Program-made: the position numbers and the translations under genes | Assembly: GCA_950097015.1 (NCBI GenBank) | Contig: CATNEN010000012.1 | Location: 1,364,001-1,428,000 of the forward strand | Direction of reading: 5' to 3' | Source of the DNA: Macrostomum hystrix | Taxonomy: Eukaryota; Animalia; Platyhelminthes | DNA: 64,000 nt | The notes under the pieces: generated by a model | What the model was told of the DNA's origin: nothing | Database searches by the model: none | What the model saw: only the letters and a program-made list of their open reading frames with translations | Shown: piece by piece, positions 14,505-31,762 of the stretch | Numbering within the stretch: the first letter of the stretch is position 1 | Layout of the letters: every line of letters begins with the position of its first letter

Positions 14505-15194
14505 ATGCTGCCGGCCCCCTTATTCGACTATCAGTTTCGCGTCATCATCATCGGGGACACGATGGTCGGCAAGTCCTCGCTTGTGCGCTACTTTGTCGAA
14601 GGCACCCCGGACACCGCCTGCGAGGCCACAGTTGGTGTTGATTTCTTTGCTCGAGTTGTCCAACTGCCCGACGGTTGCCGGGTGAAGCTGACACTGTGGG
14701 ACACGGCCGGGCACGAGAAATTCCGCTCCATCACCCGCTCCTATTATCGCAACGCTGTCGCAGCCTTGATAGTCTACGATGTCACCAATCGTTCTAGCTT
14801 GGCCAGCGTGCCTGCTTGGCTTAAAGAGGCCCGCCTGAATATGACCTGCACCGACCCCGGCCTGCTGCTGGTCGGCCAGAAAGCCGACATGACCAGCCAC
14901 AGAACGGTGGGCCGCGAGGAAGCCGTCAGCTTAGCCGACCAGTTGGGCTTGGCCTATGTTGAAACTTCCGCAATCAGCGGCCACAATGTGGAGGCCTGCT
15001 TTCGCGCCCTGGCCGAGCGGGTCTACTGCCTGCTCGTGGCTGGCCGCTACTCCGCAATGTCGCCCGACTGGGACGGCGTGCGAGTCGGTCGCGCCGCGGC
15101 GACTTCTTCTTTGCCGACTGCGGTTCGATTGACAGCTAATTATGGCGAATCTGGCGAAGCTGCCACTCAGTCCGGATCTGGCTGCTGTGCGTGA
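14505..15194 (+). CDS. RAB39: Rab39-like small GTPase, intronless, 229 aa
   Basis: YQFRVIIIGDTMVGKSS, TVGVDFFAR, LWDTAGHEKFRSITRSYYRN, ETSA, WDGVRVG and terminal CCA match the Rab39 subfamily pattern. Confidence 0.85.
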   Translation: MLPAPLFDYQFRVIIIGDTMVGKSSLVRYFVEGTPDTACEATVGVDFFARVVQLPDGCRVKLTLWDTAGHEKFRSITRSYYRNAVAALIVYDVTNRSSLASVPAWLKEARLNMTCTDPGLLLVGQKADMTSHRTVGREEAVSLADQLGLAYVETSAISGHNVEACFRALAERVYCLLVAGRYSAMSPDWDGVRVGRAAATSSLPTAVRLTANYGESGEAATQSGSGCCA

Positions 15195-15281
15195 CCGCCT
15201 GATTGATTGACTGATTGACTGATTGACTGATTGATTGACTGATTGATTGACTGATTGACTGATTGACTGATTGATTGATTG
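15195..15281. repeat. (GATT/GACT)n microsatellite just after the Rab39 stop
   Basis: Direct inspection. Confidence 0.9.
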
Positions 15282-15310
15282 AATGATTTATAATTCATCA
15301 ACCACCGGCA

Positions 15311-15433
15311 GGAGTTTCTAGCCCTAGTGGTTAGAGCGTCGAACTCCAATACTTGAAGGTCGGGGGTTCGATTCCCGACTCCACTGAAACAATTCGTGTA
15401 TGAATTGTTATGCGTGTTAGTAAGACACTTAAT
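15311..15433 (+). mobile_element. SINE 5' fragment (tRNA head plus start of CORE)
   Basis: TAGTGGTTAGAGCG..GGTTCGATTCCCGACTCCACTG..TTAGTAAGACACTTAA, homologous to the 15553 copy. Confidence 0.75.
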
Positions 15434-15552
15434 ACAGTTTAGCTACAGGCTCAATATACTGTAATTACAGACTCGATATACTATAGTTACAGACTCCATA
15501 TGCTGTGCTTACAGACATGATATGCTGTAGATACAGACTCAATGTGCTGTAG

Positions 15553-15863
15553 GGAGGTTGTAGCCCAGTGGTCAGGGCGTCGGACTCACTACTTGAAGGT
15601 CGGTGGTTCGATTCCCGACTCCACTGTAACAATTTGTGTCCTTTAGCAAGGCACTTAACTCTGCATTGCTTCAGTTCACCCAGCTGTTAAATGTGTATCA
15701 GCACTAGCTGGGGTGATTGAGGGGTGGGGTAACTGGGGTGTGGCGTCCCCCCAGTCCATGGACTGAACAGCCGTACACAGCCTTCAGATGCGCCGCGCAA
15801 TAGCTGGGGCTGTGCTGTCGGCTGCATATCTGGCCCAATCAGGGGCAGATGTAATAAAAAAAT
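15553..15863 (+). mobile_element. tRNA-derived CORE-type SINE, near full length
   Basis: A-box-like AGTGGTCAGGGCG and B box GGTTCGATTCC, then GTGTCCTTTAGCAAGGCACTTAACTCTGCATTGCTTCAGTTCACCCAGCTGTTAAATG (MIR/CORE-like), ending in an A-rich tail. Several dispersed copies exist in the window. Confidence 0.8.
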
Positions 15864-16332
15864 CTATTTATTGAATTGTCTTTTCGGTTTTATTATAGAG
15901 TGATAGTTTAGTATTTTAGTATTTCCATCATTAGGCATTGTTTTTGCCAGTCTATCCAGAATATTCCAGTCTCTGCTGGTGCGTAAATGTACTTTTATTA
16001 GTTTTTCTAACAATCTGATCTGAATCTCTTGTCCTTTGCCTTGTGAACTCAGTATGTCTGCTAAGACCTTGTCCAGTTCTTTTATTAACAGCTGATCTGA
16101 ATTCCATTTTGCAAAGCCAATTCTGTGTTTGAATTATTTAAAATGTTTTTATTTTTAGTTTTAACTTTTGTATTCTCTAGATAAACTTGGATATGAAGGA
16201 ATAGATCATATTGCCAATCTATCAACATAGATTAACAGAAGATCACGCTGGTATTTCAACTACCCACAGCTTTCTTTATTTCTGTATCTCCCAAAATGTT
16301 CAACCAATAGCCTTGAAAATCCGAGTCCGATG

Positions 16333-16499
16333 TTAGGACGTCGGACTCACTACTTGAAGGTCAGGGGTTCGATTCCCGACTCCACTGTAACAATTTGTGC
16401 CTTTAGCAAGACGCGTAACTCTGGATTGCTTCAGTTCAGCCAGCTGTTAAATGGGTACCAGCATCAGCTGGGCCAATTGAGGGTGGGTGTGGCGTCCCC
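16333..16499 (+). mobile_element. 5' half of the SINE interrupted by the YR element
   Basis: Aligns to ~15570-15750 and stops abruptly at GGCGTCCCC. Confidence 0.85.
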
Positions 16500-17096
16500 T
16501 ATGTTAGCGGTGATGACACGAAACAAAGAAATGACGCACATCGTAGGGGATACCCGACAGGCCACATCACAGATATGACACTCCAAAAAAATATATCCGA
16601 CCAGAATATTTCGAAATATGACACATAAAAGTTTTGCAAAGAAACTGTAAATTTTGCATTATAAGCTACTAATAGTAGAAATGGGAAAATATTTCGGTCG
16701 CAGCTTTAAAGGGTTTGAGGTCAATCGTATTAGACACAAGTCCAGCTATTTCAGTTATATATATAAATTTATTATTTACTTTATTTTCATATTTTCAAAT
16801 TATATTTTATGTGCATACGAATTTTCAGTTACAAGTTTCAAATATTATATTATATTGACATGTTTCACAAGTTAGAAAATAGTTTTAATAGCATGTTGAA
16901 ATAGTACAAAAGCGCAGAAAAAGTGCAACAGAGAAAAAACCGCGCAGCACAGGTGTTGGCACCGCTGCTATGCATTAAATTGAGCTTGCCCAATCTGCTT
17001 TCGATCACTCTCCTAGAACTGTCTTCCTATAATCACCCTCTTTGAATCGATCAGAATCTGCTGCCTTCGTTTTTTGGCCTAATTAAGCGTAGAAAG

Positions 17097-20000
17097 TTAC
17101 ACAGAGTTCAGGAATCTGTCAATACGGTCTTCAGCACTTATTTTTGAAGCAGCTGCCATTTGCTCGAAGGCTTCTCTCAGCTCTTGTGATGCGCCTCGTG
17201 GTGCTGCCATTGAATTTTCCACGAACCGCCACTGGTGCAACCACGCACTTGACGGTGGGGCGTCGAAAAATTGCACATGCACATGTATCATGCTCACTCC
17301 TCTTGTGCATCTCGAACCGCGTCGTGGCAGACAAACCATTGCTGGCCACCAACATTCGCCATTGGTCGGCCAGTACCCTAGCACCAGCGTGCCAGGCTCC
17401 AGTTTCTGCCGTTTGCAGGATTGGTCGGCAGCTGGTGGCAGCCGCCTTTTGCGGGTTGCGCCCGCAGCCGACTCCGCGGGTAGATCAGCGCCAGCGACGC
17501 CAGAGGAGCCCGCAACCGACTCCGCGGGCAAATCAGCGCCAGCGACGCCAGAGGAGCCCGCAGCCGACTCCGTGGGCAGATCAGCGCCAGCGACGCCAGA
17601 GGAGCCCGCAACCGACTCCGCGGGCAGATCAGCGCCAGCGACGCCAGAGGAGCCCGCAGCCGACTCCGTGGGCAGATCAGCGCCAGCGACGCCAGAGGAG
17701 CCCGCAGCCGACTCCGCGGGCAGATCAGCGCCAGCGACGCCAGAGGAGCCTGCAGCCGACTCCGTGGGCAGATCAGCGCCAGCGACGCCAGAGGAGCCCG
17801 CAGCCGACTCCGCGGGCAGATCAGCGCCAGCGACGCCAGAGGAGCCCGCAGCCGAGCTGTACAATTCCTCAAGCAGCTCTTGGTTAAAATCTGCCAGCGA
17901 AGAAGAGAACGACAGATTTGTCAAGCTGTCGAGAAAGTCGCCAGCAGCAGCATTCTCAGGCAGAACGGCGCCGGCAGCAGCATTCCCAGGCAGAACGGCG
18001 CCAGCAGCAGCATTCTCAGGCAGAACGGCGCCAGCAGCAGCATTCTCAGGCAGAACGGCGCCAGCAGCAGCATTCTCAGGCAGAACGGCGCCAGCAGCAG
18101 CATTCTCAGGCAGAACGGCGCCGGCACTCGGCCGTTTCGCCTTCGGACCAGCCACCGAAGCGTCGGTTGTTTTCTGCCACCGGCACGGCTTGGCTTTGGC
18201 TTTTGCGGATGCGGTAGTGGCTGGCTTTCTGCGAATACCGCCGTCGGCAGCTAAAAAACGGTGTCATATTTGATAATGTATTTATATAATTGTTATAGCC
18301 TCTGCACCCATTATATTAAAAAAATATAATATAGAAAGTCGGTGCTACTTTCTTTATAGCACCGACACTGCGACTTGGCATACAAGCATACAGGTTTCGA
18401 TTCCCTTATGTCCTGACTCCCTGAGGTCCTGATTCACTTGGCCAAATTGACGAAATTCACTGAGGTCACAATTCATCAAAATCTCAATTCACAAAGCTTA
18501 TTTAACAATAATGCACTCACTGGCGGCGCAGTTAATTCTGCTCGCTAAGCTGCCAGCAGCCGATTGCAGGTCGTTGCCGAGTAGCGGAGCCTTGGCGTTT
18601 ACGTCCTCTTCACGCACGCCGGCGCCCTCTGTGACCAGTCGCTTTGTGAGCTGGCGGCCCTTCTCTCTTCTTTTCTTAGTCTGGGTCTGATTAGCAAAGT
18701 GGTGGGATAAAAAGGTTAATAATAATAAAAGCAAACTTAATTTTAACAATACATTCTTATTTGGACTCTTTTGTTTCATAATTTCTCAAAAAATACTATA
18801 CAGTGAAGCTTTTCAAAGAGTGAAAGTGAAGCTATTGCTAAAGCAAGTATATATGTATTAAAGCTTCCAGCTTGAGAAATTCCTAGTTCGTGAAGCGATT
18901 TTATAGATAACTTGAGTAAATCTTACCTGGTAAAATCGGCGCTGCACTCCTTCGGTGTGATTTTGATGGTCTGCCATCAAGCGCTGTTCTTCCGCCGTGG
19001 CGGATTCCAGACCCATCGTTTCCAGCCACTCGCGGAATTTAGAAACAGTGACATTGTGCAGCAGCGGTGAGTATCTTTTTCTATACTGGTAAAATAGGCG
19101 GTCGAAAGAGCCGTACGGGAATAGAAACGCCGGAGCGTCGTCGCTCGGGCTCTCCGCAAATCGTTGCGCCAGGACCTGCATCACCAGGTCTGCGCACGGC
19201 GTTACACTTGCCCACGCTGAGCCGTGGCCCTCATTTGATTTATGCTCTTTAACTTTGAGAGGCTCATTCGGCGACTTCAGCCACCGGCGTGCGTCCGAAA
19301 TTTTGCAGGCGGAGGCCACGCCCTGCCGGTTGGCGTTTCCATCGCCGAAACAAATACACATCCCGATGGCCAGGAATGTCACCGTCCTGTGTCAATGTTG
19401 AGGCCAAGATTTTTTCATCCCATGATTAAGTGCCATTTCAAAGATTAGGTGCCATTTCAAAGATTAGGTGCCATTTCAAAGATTAGGTGCCATTTCAAAG
19501 ATTAGGTGCCATTTCAAAGATTAGGTGCCATTTCAAAGATTAGGTGCCACTTCAAAATCTAAGTGCCACTTTAAAATCTAAGTGCCACTTCAAAATCTAA
19601 GTGCCACTTTAAAATCTAAGTGCCACTTCAAAATCTAAGTGCCACTTCAAAATCTAAGTGCCACTTCAAAATCTAAGTGCCACTTTAAAATCTAAGTGCC
19701 ACTTCAAAATCTAAGTGCCACTTCAAAATCTAAGTGCCACTTTAAAATCTAAGTGCCACTTCAAAATCTAAGTGCCACTTCAAAATCTAAGTGCCACTTC
19801 AAAATCTAAGTGCCACTTTAAAATCTAAGTGCCACTTCAAAATCTAAGTGCCACTTCAAAATCTAAGTGCCACTTCAAAATCTAAGTGCCACTTCAAAAT
19901 CTAAGTGCCACTTTAAAGATTATAAGAACTCACCGGTCTTTTGTGCGCCTAGCCTCCTCCAGGACGGTGGTCTTCATCTCGAAGACGGCCTTAATTTGGT

Positions 20001-22676
20001 CGCCGGTCATGAGCTCTTCTTCCTTCCGGTCCATCAGGTCCGCGTAATATTTTGCCTTGGGACCCATGGAACTAGCAGTCCAATTCTTTGTCGACTGCCT
20101 GTATGATGTTAAATGCTGCAGCAGCCCATCCTCAATCACTTGTTGATAGCGTCGGGTGACCATAAAGTTGCCGACTTTTTCCAGCGCAGAGACGCTCTGC
20201 TTGAGCATCGAGTAGGAAAGGTTATCCAAATACGCGCTGATTCGGTCGCGCTGGTCTTCGATGACCAGTGAGTTAAATGAGTCGATGTCAAGTGAGCGCA
20301 TCAGCCGCTTCAGGTAGCAACGAATTTCGCGTACCGTTGCCGGCTTCTTGCGCCCACCGAGAGAGCTGGCCAAGAATGCACAGAGTGCCTCAACGTCGTC
20401 TGTCGACGGGTGCTCGGCCACGGCTGGTCTAGCCGGCACTCTGCTTCTGGCCTCAGTCAGCTTCTGCTCCTTTGCAGCTCTTGCTGCGTCTGGGTGGCTG
20501 TTGCGTCTGTGGCTCGCCAGCAAATTTGTGTCGTTGCGCCACTCGCCGCAGATTTCGCACTGTACCGCCTTCTCTGCCATTGGGCCGGCAGTCAGCTGAT
20601 GCGTGTTAAGCTTAACAGAAGCACGCAGAATCTGGAGGGCTCTTTTGTGCAGAATAAATTCAGGAAGCCCATCCTTTGCCAGATTTTGTTTTGTCTCTTC
20701 GATCAGATTCATATGCGCTCTTTTGATGTGTTCACTAAAGCGGGACTCTTTGATTGGCATGCAGTCACCGAATGGGCAAATATACTCCTGCCCGGCACGC
20801 GACTTGGGCTGCTGAGCTGCGGCGGGCGGCTGCTGAGCTGCGGTGGGCGGCTGCTGAGCTGCGGTGGGCGGCTGCTGAGCTACGGTGGGCGGCTGCTGAG
20901 CTGCGGCGAGTGGCTGCTGAGCTGCGGTGGGCGGCTGCTGAGCTGCGGGGGGCGGCTGCTGAGCTGCGGTGGGCGGCTGCTGAGCTGCGGTGGGCGGCTG
21001 CTGAGCTGCGGGGGGCGGCTGCTGAGCTGCGGGGGGCGGCTGCTGAGCTGCGGGGGGCGGCTGCTGAGCTGCGGTGGGCGGCTGCTGAGCTGCGGCGAGT
21101 GGCTGCTGAGCTGCGGTGGGCGGCTGCTGAGCTGCGAGGGGCGGCTGCTGAGCTGCGGTGGGCGGCTGCTGAGCTGCGCCGGGCGGCTGCTGAGCTGAGC
21201 CGGGCTGAGACGCATCAGTCTGAGTAGAGAAATTGCAGTTATTGGTAGAGTAGAGGCAGGGCAGTGTGGTAGAGACAGGGCAATGTGGTAGAGACAGGGC
21301 AGTGTGGTAGAGACAGGGCAGTGTGGTAGAGACAGGGCAGTGTGGTAGAGACAGGGCAGTGTGGTAGAGACAGGGCAATGTGGTAGAGACAGGGCAGTGT
21401 GGTAGAGACAGGGCAGTGTGGTAGAGACAGGGCAGTGTGGTAGAGACAGGGCAGTGTGGTAGAGACAGGGCAGTGTGGTAGAGACAGGGCAGTGTGGTAG
21501 AGACAGGGCAGTGTGGTAGAGGCAGGGCAGTGTGGTAGAGGCAGGGCAGTGTGGTAGAGACAGGGCAATGTGGTAGAGACAGGGCAGTGTGGTAGAGACA
21601 GGGCAATGTGGTAGAGACAGGGCAGTGTGGTAGAGACAAGGCAATGTGGTAGAGACAGGGCAGTGTGGTAGAGACAGGGCAATGTGGTAGAGACAGGGCA
21701 GTGTGGTAGAGACAGGGCAGTGTGGTAGAGACAGGGCAATGTGGTAGATACAGGGCAGTGTGGTAGAGACAGGGCAATGTGGTAGAGACAGGGCAGTGTG
21801 GTAGAGACAGGGCAATGTGGTAGAGACAGGGCAGTGTGGTAGAGACAGGGCAGTGTGGTAGAGACAGGGCAGTGTGGTAGAGACAGGGCAATGTGGTAGA
21901 GACAGGGCAGTGTGGTAGAGACAGGGCAGTGTGGTAGAGACAGGGCAGTGTGGTAGAGACAGGGCAGTGTGGTAGAGACAGGGCAGTGTGGTAGAGGCAG
22001 GGCAGTGTGGTAGAGACAGGGCAATGTGGTAGAGACAGGGCAGTGTGGTAGAGACAGGGCAATGTGGTAGAGACAGGGCAGTGTGGTAGAGACAAGGCAA
22101 TGTGGTAGAGACAGGGCAGTGTGGTAGAGACAGGGCAATGTGGTAGAGACAGGGCAGTGTGGTAGAGACAGGGCAGTGTGGTAGAGACAGGGCAATGTGG
22201 TAGATACAGGGCAGTGTGGTAGAGACAGGGCAATGTGGTAGAGACAGGGCAGTGTGGTAGAGACAGGGCAATGTGGTAGAGACAGGGCAGTGTGGTAGAG
22301 ACAGGGCAGTGTGGTAGAGACAGGGCAGTGTGGTAGAGACAGGGCAATGTGGTAGAGACAGGGCAGTGTGGTAGAGACAGGGCAGTGTGGTAGAGACAGG
22401 GCAGTGTGGTAGAGACAGGGCAGTGTGGTAGAGACAGGGCAATGTGGTAGAGACAGGGCAGTGTGGTAGAGACAGGGCAATGTGGTAGAGACAGGGCAGT
22501 GTGGTAGGGACAGGGCAGTTATTAGTAAAAGTATGCTCTTCACTTTCACTTACCATTGACTGAAATCGATCAGACGCGGCGAGCTCTTTCTCAAACGACT
22601 TTTGCCGCTTAGCGACGTCATAGCGTTTGCCTTTGCGGCTTATCAGCTGTTTTATAAACTCAAATTGTTTGGACAT
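17097..22676 (-). CDS. Zinc-finger + tyrosine recombinase + PWWP protein (~1062 aa); exons 22676-22554, 21219-19934, 19386-18927, 18686-18521, 18250-17097
   Basis: All four introns are GT-AG with matching phases (0, 2, 0, 1); the 3189 nt join is open. Motifs: C2H2-like fingers (CPFGDC..H..H; CEIC..H..H); YR residues NANR, EHKS, SKFR, NH, FYQ; PWWP-like LVLGYW..CWWPAMV..HVQFFD.PPSSAW. Exon 1 and the start codon are less certain. Confidence 0.85.
17440..17860 (-). repeat. Coding 48-bp repeat (AAGSSGVAGADLPAES) within the YR-PWWP last exon
   Basis: Unit is a multiple of 3 and the frame is preserved. Confidence 0.9.
17935..18125 (-). repeat. Coding 30-bp repeat (GAVLPENAAA)
   Basis: Unit is a multiple of 3 and the frame is preserved. 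Confidence 0.9.
19430..19917. repeat. 19-bp array (AAGTGCCACTTCAAAATCT) in intron 2 of the YR gene
   Basis: Period 19; two sub-variants. Confidence 0.95.
20805..21200 (-). repeat. Coding 21-bp repeat (AQQPPxA)
   Basis: Frame preserved within exon 2. Confidence 0.9.
21245..22518. repeat. 19-bp array (GTGGTAGAGACAGGGCAGT) in intron 1 of the YR gene
   Basis: Period 19, ~66 copies. Confidence 0.97.
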
Positions 22677-22755
22677 TTGAATTATTATATATAGAAAAAA
22701 TGAAATTAATTGAGAATTAGAAATCTGGCTTTTTGAAAAGCCAGTTGAAGTCCCA

Positions 22756-22762
22756 TTTTATA
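22756..22762 (-). promoter_or_regulatory. Candidate TATA box for the YR-PWWP gene
   Basis: TATAAAA on the minus strand ~80 nt upstream of the ATG at 22676. Confidence 0.35.
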
Positions 22763-23111
22763 TGAAGTGGCAGTTTGACATCAACAAGTAATGTTCACTC
22801 TAATTTTTATTGGTTCGGAATGGGGTTGTCAAAATAATTTAACATTCATGGAACGTGTCAAACCCATTATGCTTTTAGACTCAAAAGGGGTGGACTGTCT
22901 CATTTCAGTAGTGACTCATTTTTACAGCATATTACTTTATTTCAAAATGAAAGATGTGCATCAACGAGTATGAAACATAGATTAGGTACAATGTGCCTCA
23001 CTCACATTCACTGCAGCCTGATTCACTGCCTGATTCACAGCCAGACTCACTGATCTAGTTTGGGTTTCGAATACTCAGTTATTTCTGCATTTTTTTTATT
23101 GCGTAGCCCTT

Positions 23112-23912
23112 GAGATCCGCTGCTGTCAATATACAGTGAGCAGTGGATAACACAGAAGTGACACACAATGGGAGAGATATACAGCTATTCAAAATGACAC
23201 AGACATGCTGCAAATCATAAACACTGTGAGATCCGCTGCTGTCAATATACAGTACGCAGTGGATAACACAGAAGTGACACACAATGGGAGGGATATACAG
23301 CTATTCAAAATGACACAGACATGCTGCAAATCATAAACACTGTGAGATCCGCTGCTGTCAATATACAGTACGCAGTGGATAACACAGAAGTGACACACAA
23401 TGGGAGGGATATACAGCTATTCAAAATGACACAGACATGCTGCAAATCATAAACACTGTGAGATCCGCTGCTGTCAATATACAGTACGCAGTGGATAACA
23501 CAGAAGTGACACACAATGGGAGGGATATACAGCTATTCAAAATGACACAGACATGCTGCAAATCATAAACACTGTGAGATCCGCTGCTGTCAATATACAG
23601 TAAGCAATGGATAACACAGAAGTGACACACAATGTGAGGGATATACAGCTATTCAAAATGACACAGACATGCTGCAAATCATAAACACTGTGAGATCCGC
23701 TGCTGTCAATATACAGTAAGCAGTGGATAACACAGAAGTGACACACAATGGGAGGGATATACAGCTATTCAAAATGACACAGACATGCTGCAAATCATAA
23801 ACACTGTGAGATCCGCTGCTGTCAATATACAGTACGCAGTGGATAACACAGAAGTGACACACAATGGGAGGGATATACAGCTATTCAAAATGACACAGAC
23901 ATGCTGCAAATC
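23112..23912. repeat. 116-bp tandem array 1 (~7 units)
   Basis: GAGATCCGCTG at 23112, 23228, 23344 and onward. Confidence 0.97.
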
Positions 23913-24607
23913 TTAAGCGCTGTGAAATCATTCACAGCCTCATTCACAGCCTTATTCACACTCACAACTTTATTCACAGCCTCACTCACATTCACAGCCC
24001 CACTCACATTCGCAGCCTCACTTACATTCACAGCCTTACTCACATTCACAGCCTCATTCACATCTTCACTAACATTCATAGCCACATTTACAACCTCGTG
24101 CACAGCACAAACCTTGAGACCGAAACAGAAGCTCGATTTTTTCGACATTTCGCAACAGTTGGAGAGGCCTAAAACTGGGGGTGCTAACGGCATTGCGCAA
24201 GAATATTGGTATTGTTAATGTAAGTATTGTAGTCAAAAAAAGATACGTTTATATCAACCTGGTGTCAATAATGAACAGTGTAGCTTCATGACTGCATGCA
24301 AAACTGTCAATCACACCTCCAACAGATAAGGACCAAAAACAGATTGAGTATTACTTACCCCAGAACTGCGTTCCTATTAAAAATAAAACACTAACACAAA
24401 AAGGGGATTATTGCGCAATCATGACAATTACCTGGTTCAAGTCAAGCAAGGCATAACTTGCTTTAAAGCTAGCTCACCCGATCTAATTCACAGCCTCATT
24501 CACATTCACTGCCTCATTCAGTACCTCATTCACAGCCAGACTCACTGATCTAGTTTGGGTTTCGAATACTCAGTTTTTCAGCATTTTTAATTCATTGAGT
24601 AGCCCTT

Positions 24608-27148
24608 GAGATCCGCTGCTGTCAATATACAGTACGCAGTGGATAACACAGAAGTGACACACAATGGGAGGGATATACAGCTATTCAAAATGACACAGAC
24701 ATGCTGCAAATCATAAACACTGTGAGATCCGCTGCTGTCAATATACAGTACGCAGTGGATAACACAGAAGTGACACACAATGGGAGAGATATACAGCTAT
24801 TCAAAATGACACAGACATGCTGCAAATCATAAACACTGTGAGATCCGCTGCTGTCAATATACAGTACGCAGTGGATAACACAGAAGTGACACACAATGGG
24901 AGGGATATACAGCTATTCAAAATGACACAGACATGCTGCAAATCATAAACACTGTGAGATCCGCTGCTGTCAATATACAGTACGCAGTGGATAACACAGA
25001 AGTGACACACAATGGGAGAGATATACAGCTATTCAAAATGACACAGACATGCTGCAAATCATAAACACTGTGAGATCCGCTGCTGTCAATATACAGTACG
25101 CAGTGGATAACACAGAAGTGACACACAATGGGAGGGATATACAGCTATTCAAAATGACACAGACATGCTGCAAATCATAAACACTGTGAGATCCGCTGCT
25201 GTCAATATACAGTACGCAGTGGATAACACAGAAGTGACACACAATGGGAGAGATATACAGCTATTCAAAATGACACAGACATGCTGCAAATCATAAACAC
25301 TGTGAGATCCGCTGCTGTCAATATACAGTACGCAGTGGATAACACAGAAGTGACACACAATGGGAGGGATATACAGCTATTCAAAATGACACAGACATGC
25401 TGCAAATCATAAACACTGTGAGATCCGCTGCTGTCAATATACAGTACGCAGTGGATAACACAGAAGTGACACACAATGGGAGAGATATACAGCTATTTAA
25501 AATGACACAGACATGCTGCAAATCATAAACACTGTAAGATCCGCTGCTGTCAATATACAGTGAGCAGTGGATAACACAGAAGTGACACACAATGGGAGGG
25601 ATATACAGCTATTCAAAATGACACAGACATGCTGCAAATCATAAACACTGTGAGATCCGCTGCTGTCAATATACAGTACGCAGTGGATAACAAAGAAGTG
25701 ACACACAATGGGAGGGATATACAGCTATTCAAAATGACACAGACATGCTGCAAATCATAAACACTGTAAGATCCGCTGCTGTCAATATACAGTGAGCAGT
25801 GGATAACACAGAAGTGACACACAATGGGAGGGATATACAGCTATTCAAAATGACACAGACATGCTGCAAATCATAAACACTGTGAGATCCGCTGCTGTCA
25901 ATATACAGTACGCAGTGGATAACACAGAAGTGACACACAATGGGAGGGATATACAGCTATTCAAAATGACACAGACATGCTGCAAATCATAAACACTGTG
26001 AGATCCGCTGCTGTCAATATACAGTGAGCAGTGGATAACACAGAAGTGACACACAATGGGAGGGATATGCAGCTATTCAAAATGACACAGACATGCTGCA
26101 AATCATAAACACTGTGAGATCCGCTGCTGTCAATATACAGTACGCAGTGGATAACAAAGAAGTGACACACAATGGGAGAGATATACAGCTATTCAAAATG
26201 ACACAGACATGCTGCAAATCATAAACACTGTGAGATCCGCTGCTGTCAATATACAGTACGCAGTGGATAACAAAGAAGTGACACACAATGGGAGAGATAT
26301 ACAGCTATTCAAAATGACACAGACATGCTGCAAATCATAAACACTGTGAGATCCGCTGCTGTCAATATACAGTACGCAGTGGATAACAAAGAAGTGACAC
26401 ACAATGGGAGAGATATACAGCTATTCAAAATGACACAGACATGCTGCAAATCATAAACACTGTGAGATCCGCTGCTGTCAATATACAGTACGCAGTGGAT
26501 AACACAGAAGTGACACACAATGGGAGGGATATACAGCTATTCAAAATGACACAGACATGCTGCAAATCATAAACACTGTGAGATCCGCTGCTGTCAATAT
26601 ACAGTAAGCAATGGATAACACAGAAGTGACACACAATGGGAGGGATATACAGCTATTCAAAATGACACAGACATGCTGCAAATCATAAACACTGTGAGAT
26701 CCGCTGCTGTCAATATACAGTAAGCAATGGATAACACAGAAGTGACACACAATGGGAGGGATATACAGCTATTCAAAATGACACAGACATGCTGCAAATC
26801 ATAAACACTGTGAGATCCGCTGCTGTCAATATACAGTACGCAGTGGATAACACTGAAGTGACACACAATGGGAGGGATATACAGCTATTCAAAATGACAC
26901 AGACATGCTGCAAATCATAAACACTGTGAGATCCGCTGCTGTCAATATACAGTAAGCAATGGATAACACAGAAGTGACACACAATGGGAGGGATATACAG
27001 CTATTCAAAATGACACAGACATGCTGCAAATCATAAACACTGTGAGATCCGCTGCTGTCAATATACAGTAAGCAATGGATAACAAAGAAGTGACACACAA
27101 TGGGAGGGATATACAGCTATTCAAAATGACACAGACATGCTGCAAATC
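24608..27148. repeat. 116-bp tandem array 2 (~22 units), same unit as array 1
   Basis: Identical unit; explains the series of 69-aa MCHFCVIH ORFs. Confidence 0.97.
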
Positions 27149-27154
27149 TTAAGC

Positions 27155-27540
27155 GCTGTGAAATCATTCACAGCCTCATTCACAGCCTTATTCACACTCA
27201 CAACTTTATTCACAGCCTCACTCACATTCACAGCCCCACTCACATTCGCAGCCTCACTTACATACACAGCCTTACTCACATTCACAGCCTCACTCACATT
27301 TATAGCCTCACTCACATTCACAGCCTCACTCACATTTACAGCCTCACTCACATTCACAGCCTCACTCACATTCACAGCCTCACTTACATTTACAGCCTCA
27401 CTCACATTCACAGCCTCACTCACATTCACAGCCTCACTCACATTCACAGTCTCACTTACATTTGCAGCCTCACTCACATTCACAGCCTTACTTACATTCA
27501 CAGCCTCACTCACGTTTACATTTATGGCCTCATTCGCAGT
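27155..27540. repeat. 18-bp TTCACAGCCTCACTCACA repeat (shorter copy at 23920-24090)
   Basis: Follows each 116-bp array. Confidence 0.85.
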
Positions 27541-27836: not shown

Positions 27837-27950
27837 CCCCCCCCAGTCCATGGACTGAACAGCCGTACGCAGCCTTCAGATGCGCCGCGCAATAGCTGGG
27901 GCTGTGCTGTCGGCTGCACATCTGGCCCAATAGGGGCAGGTGTAATCAAT
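27837..27950 (+). mobile_element. 3' half of the SINE interrupted by the YR element
   Basis: Near-identical to ~15747-15855 and has no SINE head upstream. Confidence 0.85.
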
Positions 27951-28584
27951 TATGGTTAGTATTATTATTATTTTATTCCGAATTCGTAAATTAGAGTTAG
28001 TTTTTTATCATCCTACAGACAATGTTTACTCTTATACTGTATTATTCTGTTTCTGAAGTGCAGGCTGTTTGCAGGCTGTTTGTATGTACTATTTTAGTTT
28101 CTAGTTAAGCTCACAGCTTTTCTTATTGCCAACAAAAACTGCCATTTTGCTTTGCTCGTAATACAATTCCATTTCCACTTATTAACTTTGTGTTTTTATT
28201 TATCGTTTCATCTTTTGTGTAGATGTCTTTATTCAAGAATTTGAAATAAATTATTGAACTATATCATTGATCGTGTATTTTATTGGCTCTTTCAAAAACT
28301 TTAGCTACGAAATGATCATAAAAATTGTTGTTTTTTAAACAGAATTATGTGTTTCTTTATTACGAGTAATATGAATTATGATGAAGTCATAGATTTTGCA
28401 CTGCATCTCAGTCCAAATGTTATCCGCATGCCATAGACTACTTTCAGTAGGGTATTTAGCTAGTGGGTTGTTTTTTTTAGTATTTTTTGTTTTACGAGGG
28501 TATAATAAACGTGACTAATTTTCGCGGGCAACAATAAACAGCTTTTGATGTGGTGCTTGTGCATTTGTGTGTGTGTTTGTGTAT

Positions 28585-28855
28585 TGTAGCCCAGTGGTTA
28601 GGGCGTCGGACTCACTAATTGAAGGTCGGGGGTTCGATTCCCGGCTCCACAGGAACAATTTGTTTCCTTTAGCAAGGCACTTAACTCTGCATTGCTTCAT
28701 TTCACCCAGCTGTTAAATGTGTATCAGCACTAGCTGGGGCCGTTGCGTCCCCACAGTCCGTGGACCGAACAGCTGTACGCAGCCTTCATATGCAATAGCT
28801 GCGGCTGTGCTGTCGGCTGCACATCTGGCCCGATTGGGGCAGGCGTAATCAATTA
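28585..28855 (+). mobile_element. CORE-type SINE copy
   Basis: TGTAGCCCAGTGGTTAGGGCG..GGTTCGATTCC..TTTAGCAAGGCACTTAACTC..GGCTGTGCTGTCGGCTGCACATCTGGCCC. Confidence 0.8.
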
Positions 28856-29324
28856 TTTTATATTATTACTATTGCTCTCTTCAGACTGAGAGTGATTGGC
28901 ATTTGCCATAATTGTTAAACTGCCTTTCCGCTTGGCATATTCTTTTTCAGCCTAAGCAGGCCATTGTTATGTCTTCTAATTTATATTCTCTGCTGTGTAT
29001 TGTATAAACAGTTTAGCACAATTAAACTCTGCCATGTCACTTCGCAAGTACAGATAAACAGATATAAACAGCACATCTTTAGTGTCAATAAGAAATAAAG
29101 TTATTAGAAGTATAAACAGAACATACACATAGTACAAGTATCATTTCGGAACGATCATTAAAGTGTAACTCCAGCTACTAATGCAAAGCAATTTGGATTT
29201 ATCCTTTATTCGCTTCTGAAAAAAACTGGTGTCGGCAAACTCCGGCTACCTCCAGATGCGGTCTGCAAAGCTACAATTTGTTCTGAATATGTCACCTGGC
29301 CCTCCCTCACCTGTCCCATCTCTC

Positions 29325-30674: not shown

Positions 30675-31762
30675 TTATGTACAGGCTGTGATCTGGCTGC
30701 GTGATGCAGCAGCTGCAGCAGCTCGGTCCTTTCCTGTGCCATTCGTTGCAGCTCCATTCGGCCACTCTTCTCCTGCTGAACCAGCTTCTTCAGATCCTGT
30801 GGGAATCACAATCAAACCAGTTGAAAGCTCCTCCTGTTCTATCCAATCATTGAAGCCTTCTTTTTCTTTACTTTCTCCAGCCAATCACAGACATCCACAC
30901 GATCGAGTAAAAAAGTCCATAGCCAATCGCAAACATCCACGCCTTCGAGTTAGAAAATAGCCATAGCCAATCGCAGCCATCCACGCCATCGAGTTAAAAA
31001 ATATCCATAGCCAATCACAGACATCCAGGCCTTCGAGTTAAAAAATATCCATTTCCAACAACATCCACATAGCCAACATAACAAATCACCGACACTACTA
31101 CCAATTACCAACAAGTGCAATGTTCGCCTGCCCGCAATTACCTCGCTAAGCCTGTTATAGAGTCTCCGCATCTCCTCCAGCTGCTCCTGCAGGCAGTGCT
31201 CCCTCTGCACCAGGTGGCGCCGCTGCGCGTCTAGGCGCAGGTCCATTTCCAGCTTCTGCTCTGCCAGCTTGGCCATGAAGTCCTGCCTGGCCGCCTCCAG
31301 CTGTGTGCGCATGTCTTCCAGCAGTCGGGCCACGTCGGCAGCCGGCACCACCGCGGAGGTGCGCAGGTTGCAGATCTGCAGGTGGCAGGCCATCTGGCCA
31401 CGGCTTGTGTCTGTCCGGCAGGCCGGGCAGCGCATCGGCTCGCACGGGCAAGTGGACTCGTGCTGCAGCACGGACTCCAGCGGCACCTTCTCGCGACAGC
31501 CGTGCTGCCAGAATTGGCAGCGGATCTGCAACCCGTTGAGGTCGTTTCTCATGTAGCGATGGAGCTGGCGCAGCTCGCTAGCCAGAAGGATCTGCCGGTC
31601 CACCGGGCACGAGTTGTCCTCCAGCAGCCAGGCCTGGATGCAGGCAGAGCAGAAGGCGTGCTCGCAGGGCGCTTGGACGGCCTCCTCCAGGACGTCGTGA
31701 CAGATGGCGCACAGGAGGCCTTCGTTCACCTCTTCCTCGAAGCGGTCGACGTCGAAGCCCAT
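30675..31762 (-). CDS. RNF41/Nrdp1-like RING plus TRAF-type zinc-finger protein; exon 31762-31142 and probable last exon 30833-30675
   Basis: MGFDVDRF..LLCAICHDVLEEAVQAPCEHAFCSACI..W..CPVDR..MRN.L..LQIRC matches the RNF41 N-terminus. GAG|GTAATT donor at 31141. The last exon is in phase 0 but low complexity. Confidence 0.8.

Follow-up and report, generated by a model that had tools for sequence, protein, structure and literature searches.

The locus described here raises the question of whether a flatworm gene can join, on one polypeptide, an enzyme that recombines DNA and a domain that reads chromatin. It lies in a stretch of 64,000 nucleotides (nt) of the Macrostomum hystrix genome (GenBank assembly GCA_950097015.1, contig CATNEN010000012.1, positions 1,364,001 to 1,428,000 of the forward strand), hereafter the window, whose own numbering is used for all positions unless another sequence is named. 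Positions 17097-22676 of the minus strand are predicted to be one intact five-exon gene, in which a protein of the tyrosine recombinase type is closed at its C-terminus by a PWWP domain (Table 1). In this predicted gene, the fusion of PWWP and recombinase is well supported as being real and in-frame.

The modelled coding sequence comprises 3189 nt, that is, 1062 codons (1062 amino acids, aa), opening with an ATG and with its sole stop codon at the end. Its four predicted introns are all of the GT-AG type, with consensus donors (gtaagt, gtgagt, gtaaga and gtgagt) and pyrimidine-rich acceptors, and the sharp steps in composition between exons (G+C content of 45-63%) and introns (29-36%) coincide with the predicted junctions. 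Exons 1 and 2 are joined through CAATG/gtaagt (22554/22553) and the acceptor tttctctactcag/ACT (21220/21219), both in phase 0. At the end of exon 2, CCG/gtgagt at 19934 leaves two bases that are completed at 19386, and the peptide across this join (EEARRTKD-R-TVTFLAIG) is collinear with relatives encoded by a single open reading frame (ORF), as are exons 2 and 3 in general. The junction between exons 3 and 4 is in phase 0, with ...RRFYQ/gtaaga at 18927 and exon 4 beginning after ctaatcag/ at 18686, while CCA/gtgagt at 18521 leaves one base over, which is completed at 18250 after ttttttag/. Exon 1 did not appear in the original prediction; with its addition, the model gains a start codon and closes; no Met occurs in the long frame that lies upstream of the zinc fingers. 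A direct reading from the ATG at 22676 through the 19-nt array was rejected for being out of frame by 2 nt, and the gtaagt donor at 22553 together with the acceptor at 21220 resolved this stretch as intron 1. The array is open in three frames with the same 19-aa peptide in each, which accounts for the long spurious ORFs 19930..22347, 20880..22676 and 21239..22549. The 19-nt minisatellites of introns 1 and 2 are unrelated to each other.

Further support for the model came from the minisatellites themselves. All three of the periods found in predicted exons (21, 30 and 48) are multiples of 3, as opposed to those in predicted introns (19 and 19), and 9 of the 31 remaining arrays of the window have such a period; a split as clean as this between exons and introns would be expected by chance with a probability of roughly 1%. 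Moreover, exon 5 is open for ~330 codons ahead of the PWWP domain with no in-frame Met, so that it would be unable to begin a protein alone. The predicted protein opens with a short basic N-terminus and a Gln/Pro repeat. Two zinc-finger-like motifs come next, then the core-binding-like helical domain, the catalytic domain, a linker and finally the PWWP domain. The C-terminal peptide quoted in the original prediction was found where that prediction had placed it, on the minus strand (ORF 17097..18155), and the two junctions proposed there as consistent in phase (18927/18686 and 18521/18250) held base by base. The further claim that PWWP and recombinase share a frame agrees with the only gene model that closes, which places both on one polypeptide with a long repeat linker between them. 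The length of about 280 aa given for this linker had to be corrected, since 337 aa were measured from the catalytic Tyr to the PWWP domain, made up of low-complexity repeats (25% Ala, 12% Gly and 11% Ser) and with basic stretches resembling nuclear localization signals.

Table 1. Predicted exons, introns, domains and catalytic residues of the recombinase gene, in the order of transcription
Feature	Position	Strand	Details
Exon 1	22554..22676	-	41 aa, MSKQFEF...DRFQSM; ATG at 22676; donor ATG/gtaagt; phase 0
Intron 1	21220..22553	-	1334 nt; contains entire 19-nt x 66.8 pyrimidine-rich minisatellite (21250-22519); acceptor tttctctactcag/ACT
Exon 2	19934..21219	-	Coding 21-nt repeat (7-aa QQPPxAA) at 20807-21197; two zinc-finger-like motifs; core-binding-like helical domain ~19934-20400
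Zinc-finger-like motif 1	20713..20784	-	Residues 187-210, C-x4-C-x10-H-x4-H; position kept across family; zf-Di19 E 0.0013, weak
Zinc finger 2	20494..20565	-	Residues 260-283, C-x2-C-x12-H-x4-H, classical C2H2 spacing; kept across family
Intron 2	19387..19933	-	547 nt; 19-nt x 25.8 minisatellite at 19427-19917
Exon 3	18927..19386	-	Recombinase catalytic core
Catalytic residues, exon 3	R490 19326-19328; K519 19239-19241; S-x-x-R588 19032-19034; H613 18957-18959; Y622 18930-18932	-	
Intron 3	18687..18926	-	240 nt; 29% G+C
Exon 4	18521..18686	-	55 aa, basic, TQTKKRREKGRQL...; extends helix after catalytic Tyr seen in relatives
Intron 4	18251..18520	-	270 nt; 36% G+C
Exon 5	17097..18250	-	384 codons including stop; repeats 30-nt x 6.5 (17932-18126) and 48-nt x 8.2 (17460-17855)
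Basic stretch resembling a nuclear localization signal, exon 5	17406-17459	-	
PWWP domain, exon 5	17100..17405	-	Residues 961-1062; motif E-C-W-W-P; E977 at 17355-17357
Stop codon, exon 5	17097-17099	-	

To place the recombinase part, a total of 1.84 billion representative proteins were searched exhaustively by HMMER with exon 3, which gave six real relatives (E-values from 1e-8 to 4e-12, 28-33% identity). One of them came from the flatworm Macrostomum lignano, as a hypothetical protein, and the others appeared on short contigs of metagenome or SRA assemblies. Two members were added to the family later, namely P0012, from a profile search that returned only this protein and P0003, and L005, from a metagenome scan. 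No relatives were found on viral contigs, and a word-indexed homologue search with the exon-2 core found nothing. The protein P0001 (1291 aa, on an ENA contig of 312 kb) matched exon-3 residues 101-140 weakly and repeatedly, 14 times in all, and was set aside as uninformative, because it is a tandem-repeat protein whose score was summed over its units; these units of ~87 aa are weakly like exon 3 (HNVT...ATxEEQ...H), either by chance or because part of a related gene has been amplified into a satellite. The layout is the same in all members of this small family: the N-terminus is variable and rich in repeats, two zinc-finger-like motifs and a helical domain follow, and the motifs GNAxRPD, HKT..YG, T.T..R...ET and H...VA.Q.Y are invariant in the core.

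The core of the family was modelled by AlphaFold2 on a relative instead of the window protein (P0003:175-531, from an alignment of nine sequences), reaching a predicted local distance difference test score (pLDDT) of 82, and exons 2-3 of the window align with this modelled family at an E-value of about 1e-12. When the model was compared by Foldseek with the PDB, ~45 of the top 50 matches were recombinases or topoisomerase IB (best E-value 6e-4, probability 1.0), including XerA, Tn1549 integrase, Cre, protelomerase TelA, XerD, lambda integrase, XerH, integron integrase and poxvirus topoisomerase IB. In the viral library BFVD, all the named top matches were integrases or VLF-1 of baculoviruses and nudiviruses. 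Moreover, the helices of the model were aligned by Foldseek with the N-terminal domains of recombinases, in keeping with a two-domain fold (core-binding and catalytic). The fold predicted for the family is thus unambiguously that of tyrosine recombinases and type IB topoisomerases. All five catalytic positions (R, K, R, H and Y) are kept in the window copy and conserved family-wide, and their placement in the model fits the fold, the first Arg following the first helix of the catalytic domain, the Lys lying in a beta-hairpin, the second Arg at a helix start, and the His and Tyr near the C-terminus, as the fold expects.

At the other end of the protein, the last 117 residues (17100-17450, minus strand) matched the Pfam PWWP model PF00855 with 27.6 bits and an E-value of 4.2e-6 (envelope 17154-17366), the gathering cut-off of this model being 25.6 bits. 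In a phmmer search of the PDB sequences, the top matches were PWWP domains only, led by MSH6 (2gfu, E-value 2e-5) and followed by NSD3 and the PWWP1 domain of NSD2 (E-values of ~1e-3). The strings WWP(A/C)(M/L)V and HVQFF..P...W are common to the window domain and to MSH6, NSD2 and NSD3, with C-W-W-P and V-Q-F-F-D aligning with the motifs of these three proteins at the start of beta2 and in beta3. The region 17100-17420 is accordingly predicted to be a PWWP domain of the MSH6/NSD type, as the original prediction had proposed on its own reading of the peptide.

The mobility of the family is seen in M. lignano (GCA_002269645.1), where three copies of 7.5-8.4 kb were found (L002:8481-16903, L003:7692-15640 and L004:4399-11902). 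Identity among these annotated loci is 99.2-99.4%, their sharp ends coincide and their flanks are completely unrelated; the differences in size are due to an internal 445-bp tandem array. The left end reads CCAT/ACTTTCC..., and the right end ...GGAAAAGCC, beyond which two of the copies have CCAT and the remaining one has ATGG (GCC/ATGG). No terminal inverted repeats or long direct repeats were found, only the 4-bp CCAT direct repeat at the ends. Each element consists of a single gene, for the zinc-finger/recombinase protein, with no other long ORF and no reverse transcriptase. Given three 99%-identical copies, unrelated flanks and the CCAT repeat, the recombinase family is mobile in M. lignano and Crypton-like, and the M. 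lignano element looks like a Crypton-like transposon that was recently active and is apparently undescribed. An array of TTACAG-type motifs, spaced by ~18-21 bp, lies inside the left end (L003:7692-7790), and the complements CTGTAA/CTGCAA lie inside the right end (L003:15560-15640); these arrays are possible binding sites of the recombinase. When the two ends are joined, a weak dyad appears that is centred near the CCAT core. Introns are present in the M. lignano member as well as in L005. In M. lignano, the first exon of the gene, which is not annotated (L002:9899-10090, MAHRHKTRVLVYWQDQTEGECHYVF...GAFVMYNDENGKSWIGCVGK), has a beta-rich, barrel-like sequence that is faintly like beta1-beta2 of the window PWWP domain (LVLGYWPTNGECWW), a likeness that is not significant; with a BLASTP E-value of 0.008 for one pair and no Pfam match, it was not counted as a reader domain.

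Taken together, the reading that we favour, by a modest degree of confidence, is that the five-exon gene encodes a recombinase of a Crypton-like family to which a PWWP domain is tethered, with chromatin-biased integration as the outcome. The spliced product would cut and rejoin DNA through Tyr622, with R490, K519, R588 and H613 completing the active site. As expected of a Crypton-type enzyme, it would release the element in circular form, to be inserted by recombination at a target with which it shares a short core. The zinc fingers and the helical domain may bind the element's own sites, and the flexibly tethered PWWP domain, preceded by the basic stretch, could keep the enzyme, or the complex of the enzyme with the excised circle, on nucleosomal DNA. 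The PWWP domains of MSH6 and NSD2/3 read methylation of histone H3 lysine 36 (H3K36). As these are the nearest relatives of the window domain, transcribed gene bodies would be its likeliest address, and integration could be biased towards H3K36-methylated, transcribed chromatin. We infer not only splicing and catalytic activity but also mobility of the window copy, the ligand of the PWWP domain and the effect on targeting. In its most specific form, that of an active member of an undescribed Crypton-like family whose own H3K36me-type PWWP reader steers integration of the circle to transcribed gene bodies, the proposal is rather doubtful.

Several observations weigh against the favoured reading. 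With regard to the gene, all junctions were predicted from genomic sequence alone, and no PWWP domain was found in any of the seven relatives at E-values up to 1. With regard to the recombinase, neither exon 3 of the window (E-values up to 10) nor the relatives (up to 1) were matched by the curated models PF00589, PF12012 and PF11917 or the NCBIfam integrase models, and a profile search of the PDB sequences returned no recombinase, only chance matches above an E-value of 0.04. Likewise, NCBIfam gave chance matches only, and none of the relatives had any Pfam or NCBIfam match. The tyrosine recombinase identity claimed by the original prediction was supported by the fold of the family and by the catalytic residues present, and not by PF00589. 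Furthermore, no other member of the family has diverged as far as the window copy (28-33% identity), in which several residues shared by the other six without exception are missing, namely the P, D and N of GNAxRPD..N and the Y of YG. Where H-x-x-R usually opens with His, the window copy has Ser and the relatives have Thr; this position is also variable in topoisomerase IB and protelomerases. As for the PWWP domain, the PF00855 score is marginal, falling to 24.9 bits, slightly below the cut-off, with the whole 383-aa exon as query, and one aromatic residue of its cage is replaced, with G-E-C-W-W-P (Glu977) here vs. G-Y-P-W-W-P in MSH6/NSD2. The single-sequence AlphaFold2 model of the domain had a pLDDT of 37, with a succession of five short strands and two helices that fits a PWWP domain but is unreliable, and a word-indexed homologue search with the PWWP piece found no homologues for an alignment, so that it is the sequence that supports the PWWP fold. 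Finally, the gene occurs as a single copy within the 64-kb window and the ends of an element were not found, there being no inverted or direct k-mer matches between the flanks 15195-17096 and 22677-24620, nor any clustered short motifs around the gene like those at the M. lignano ends.

The alternative that survives best, although we consider it unlikely, is that the fusion is real while its PWWP domain is not a methyl-lysine reader, acting instead as a non-specific clamp on DNA or nucleosomes, or being a decaying remnant, with no targeting by histone marks. This explanation overlaps with the favoured reading and does not exclude it. The marginal Pfam score and the Glu speak for it, since MSH6 and NSD2 align a Tyr before the PWWP motif that we take to be one of the three aromatic-cage residues in their structures; with two of the three positions aromatic, the cage of the window domain is incomplete, and its exact ligand becomes uncertain with a Glu in the cage. 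On the other hand, the other two positions are kept as W980 (second Trp of WWP) and F1007 (second Phe of QFF), and readers of lower methylation states are known that have an acidic residue in their methyl-lysine cage. Moreover, the beta1-beta2 loop is two residues longer than in MSH6/NSD and carries a Tyr and a Trp (G-Y-W-P) that could serve as cage substitutes, and the ORF shows no decay.

Somewhat less probable again is that the gene is a domesticated host gene, in which a Crypton-like recombinase was captured long ago, joined to a PWWP domain and turned into a chromatin or DNA-repair factor that no longer moves DNA. The single copy lying between ordinary host genes, its four introns, its divergence and the lack of recognizable element ends would all fit such a history, and it is documented that animals have domesticated Crypton recombinases repeatedly (PMC3212892). 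In particular, the DUF3504 genes (ZMYM2/3/4, QRICH1, KCTD1 and KIAA1958) are conserved single-copy genes that have lost most catalytic residues (PMC3212892). They resemble the window gene in being animal genes that join a Crypton recombinase domain to chromatin or transcription domains, while the window protein differs from them in having no PF12012 match and in keeping R, K, R, H and Y. This retention of five out of five catalytic positions, as compared with the loss of most of them in the domesticated proteins (PMC3212892), argues against domestication, as does the fact that the relatives are active transposons. The introns count for less, as the members in M. lignano and L005 also have them. 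Introns are indeed common in transposon genes.

Distinctly improbable is that two genes were chained in the model, the recombinase ending soon after exon 3 (read-through ...YQVRFTQVIYKIASRTRNFSSWKL-stop) and exons 4-5 forming a separate PWWP transcript, for which there speak the predicted nature of the junctions, the lack of a PWWP domain in any relative, an ATG within intron 3 (at 18779, ORF 18498..18779) that is in frame and could open such a transcript and the complete recombinase without PWWP that retention of this intron would yield, and against which there stand the intron-like 29% G+C of 18779-18687 with a G+C step and a consensus acceptor exactly at 18686, the near-consensus donor CAG/gtaaga at 18927/18926, the match of all phases, the helix pattern after the Tyr of relatives that spliced exon 4 extends, and the long basic repeat tails of relatives after their catalytic domain. 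In some relatives these tails following the catalytic Tyr are Ala-rich, as in the window protein, which fits exons 4-5 continuing the recombinase instead of forming a separate gene.

Having set out these alternatives, the favoured reading of a Crypton-like recombinase with a tethered PWWP domain can be compared with known systems. Cryptons, according to Goodwin et al., are reportedly DNA transposons that carry a tyrosine recombinase only, and the present family is like them in having one gene for a tyrosine-recombinase-fold protein and no reverse transcriptase. Cryptons have no terminal inverted repeats or long repeats, 4- or 6-bp direct repeats being thought to be the substrate of recombination, and the termini of CryptonS are TATGG (PMC3212892). 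Similarly, the M. lignano relatives have 4-bp CCAT repeats, and CCATA is the reverse complement of TATGG. In contrast, no sequence similarity of the family to DUF3504 (CryptonA-type) or to other Pfam recombinase models was detectable, two N-terminal zinc-finger-like motifs are present, and T/S-x-x-R stands in place of H-x-x-R. The window protein also has a long linker and a PWWP domain, where fungal Cryptons carry GCR1_C instead. Animal Cryptons are without a C-terminal domain (PMC3212892, Kojima and Jurka 2011). Retrotransposons of the DIRS/Ngaro type differ in having reverse transcriptase and RNase H beside the recombinase, as well as terminal repeats; none of these were found in the window or the M. 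lignano element, and no ORFs like reverse transcriptase lie around the window gene.

Regarding the coupling to chromatin, chromoviruses have a chromodomain fused to their integrase, and HIV integrase borrows the PWWP domain of LEDGF/p75, thereby reaching H3K36me-marked transcription units (PMC13582839, PMC8149907). The window protein would be alike in coupling a DNA-integrating enzyme to a reader of histone methylation, which in its case is predicted; those are DDE integrases acting on reverse-transcribed DNA, whereas here a tyrosine recombinase would carry the PWWP domain on the same polypeptide. The N-terminal PWWP domains of MSH6 and NSD2/NSD3 are the best sequence matches (E-values from 2e-5 to 1e-3), but the window domain lies at the C-terminus of a recombinase and not in a repair protein or a methyltransferase. 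A full-text literature search in which PWWP was paired with tyrosine recombinase, Crypton, DIRS or transposase, and which did not extend to Repbase, Dfam or the InterPro architectures, gave no such fusion. The original prediction had been aware of no described fusion of this kind, which agrees with this search and with the seven relatives; the predicted pairing of domains, of which no earlier report was found, appears to be new in the literature searched.

The surroundings of the gene were also inspected. An intronless ORF for a 229-aa GTPase of the Ras/Rab family (Pfam Ras, E-value 1e-45) at 14505-15194 of the plus strand lies tail-to-tail with it, and upstream, the nearest gene on its own strand is a 270-aa ORF at 30950-31762 (minus strand) with a RING finger (E-value 8e-11) and weak matches to Sina/TRAF-type zinc fingers. 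No segment of the recombinase gene recurred within the window, apart from repeats in its 3′ flank that are like short interspersed nuclear elements (SINEs). These belong to an interspersed repeat with 81-96% identity (15558-15872 and 16332-16472, in the 3′ flank, and 27839-27949 and 28584-28867) that, from a translated string of the RWFDSRL type, is probably a tRNA-derived SINE. In addition, the window is unusually rich in minisatellites, with ~36 arrays of periods from 5 to 159 nt, and a 116-nt satellite lies just upstream of the recombinase gene (23111-27165).

How the choice of insertion site evolves can be seen in mobile elements equipped with a chromatin reader of their own, and the clear cases so far are DDE integrases. 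A tyrosine recombinase and a PWWP domain on one chain would extend the principle of the chromatin reader to a different class of enzyme, and the window protein would offer a simple system in which the removal or swap of one domain tests chromatin-guided recombination. If true, this would be the first tyrosine-recombinase transposon with built-in targeting by a histone mark, and it would have a natural counterpart in the lentiviral integration that is tethered by LEDGF. Finally, the sparse catalogue of Crypton-like elements in animals gains a lineage with this family, which is unseen by Pfam and NCBIfam, is recognizable by its fold and was recently mobile in M. lignano.

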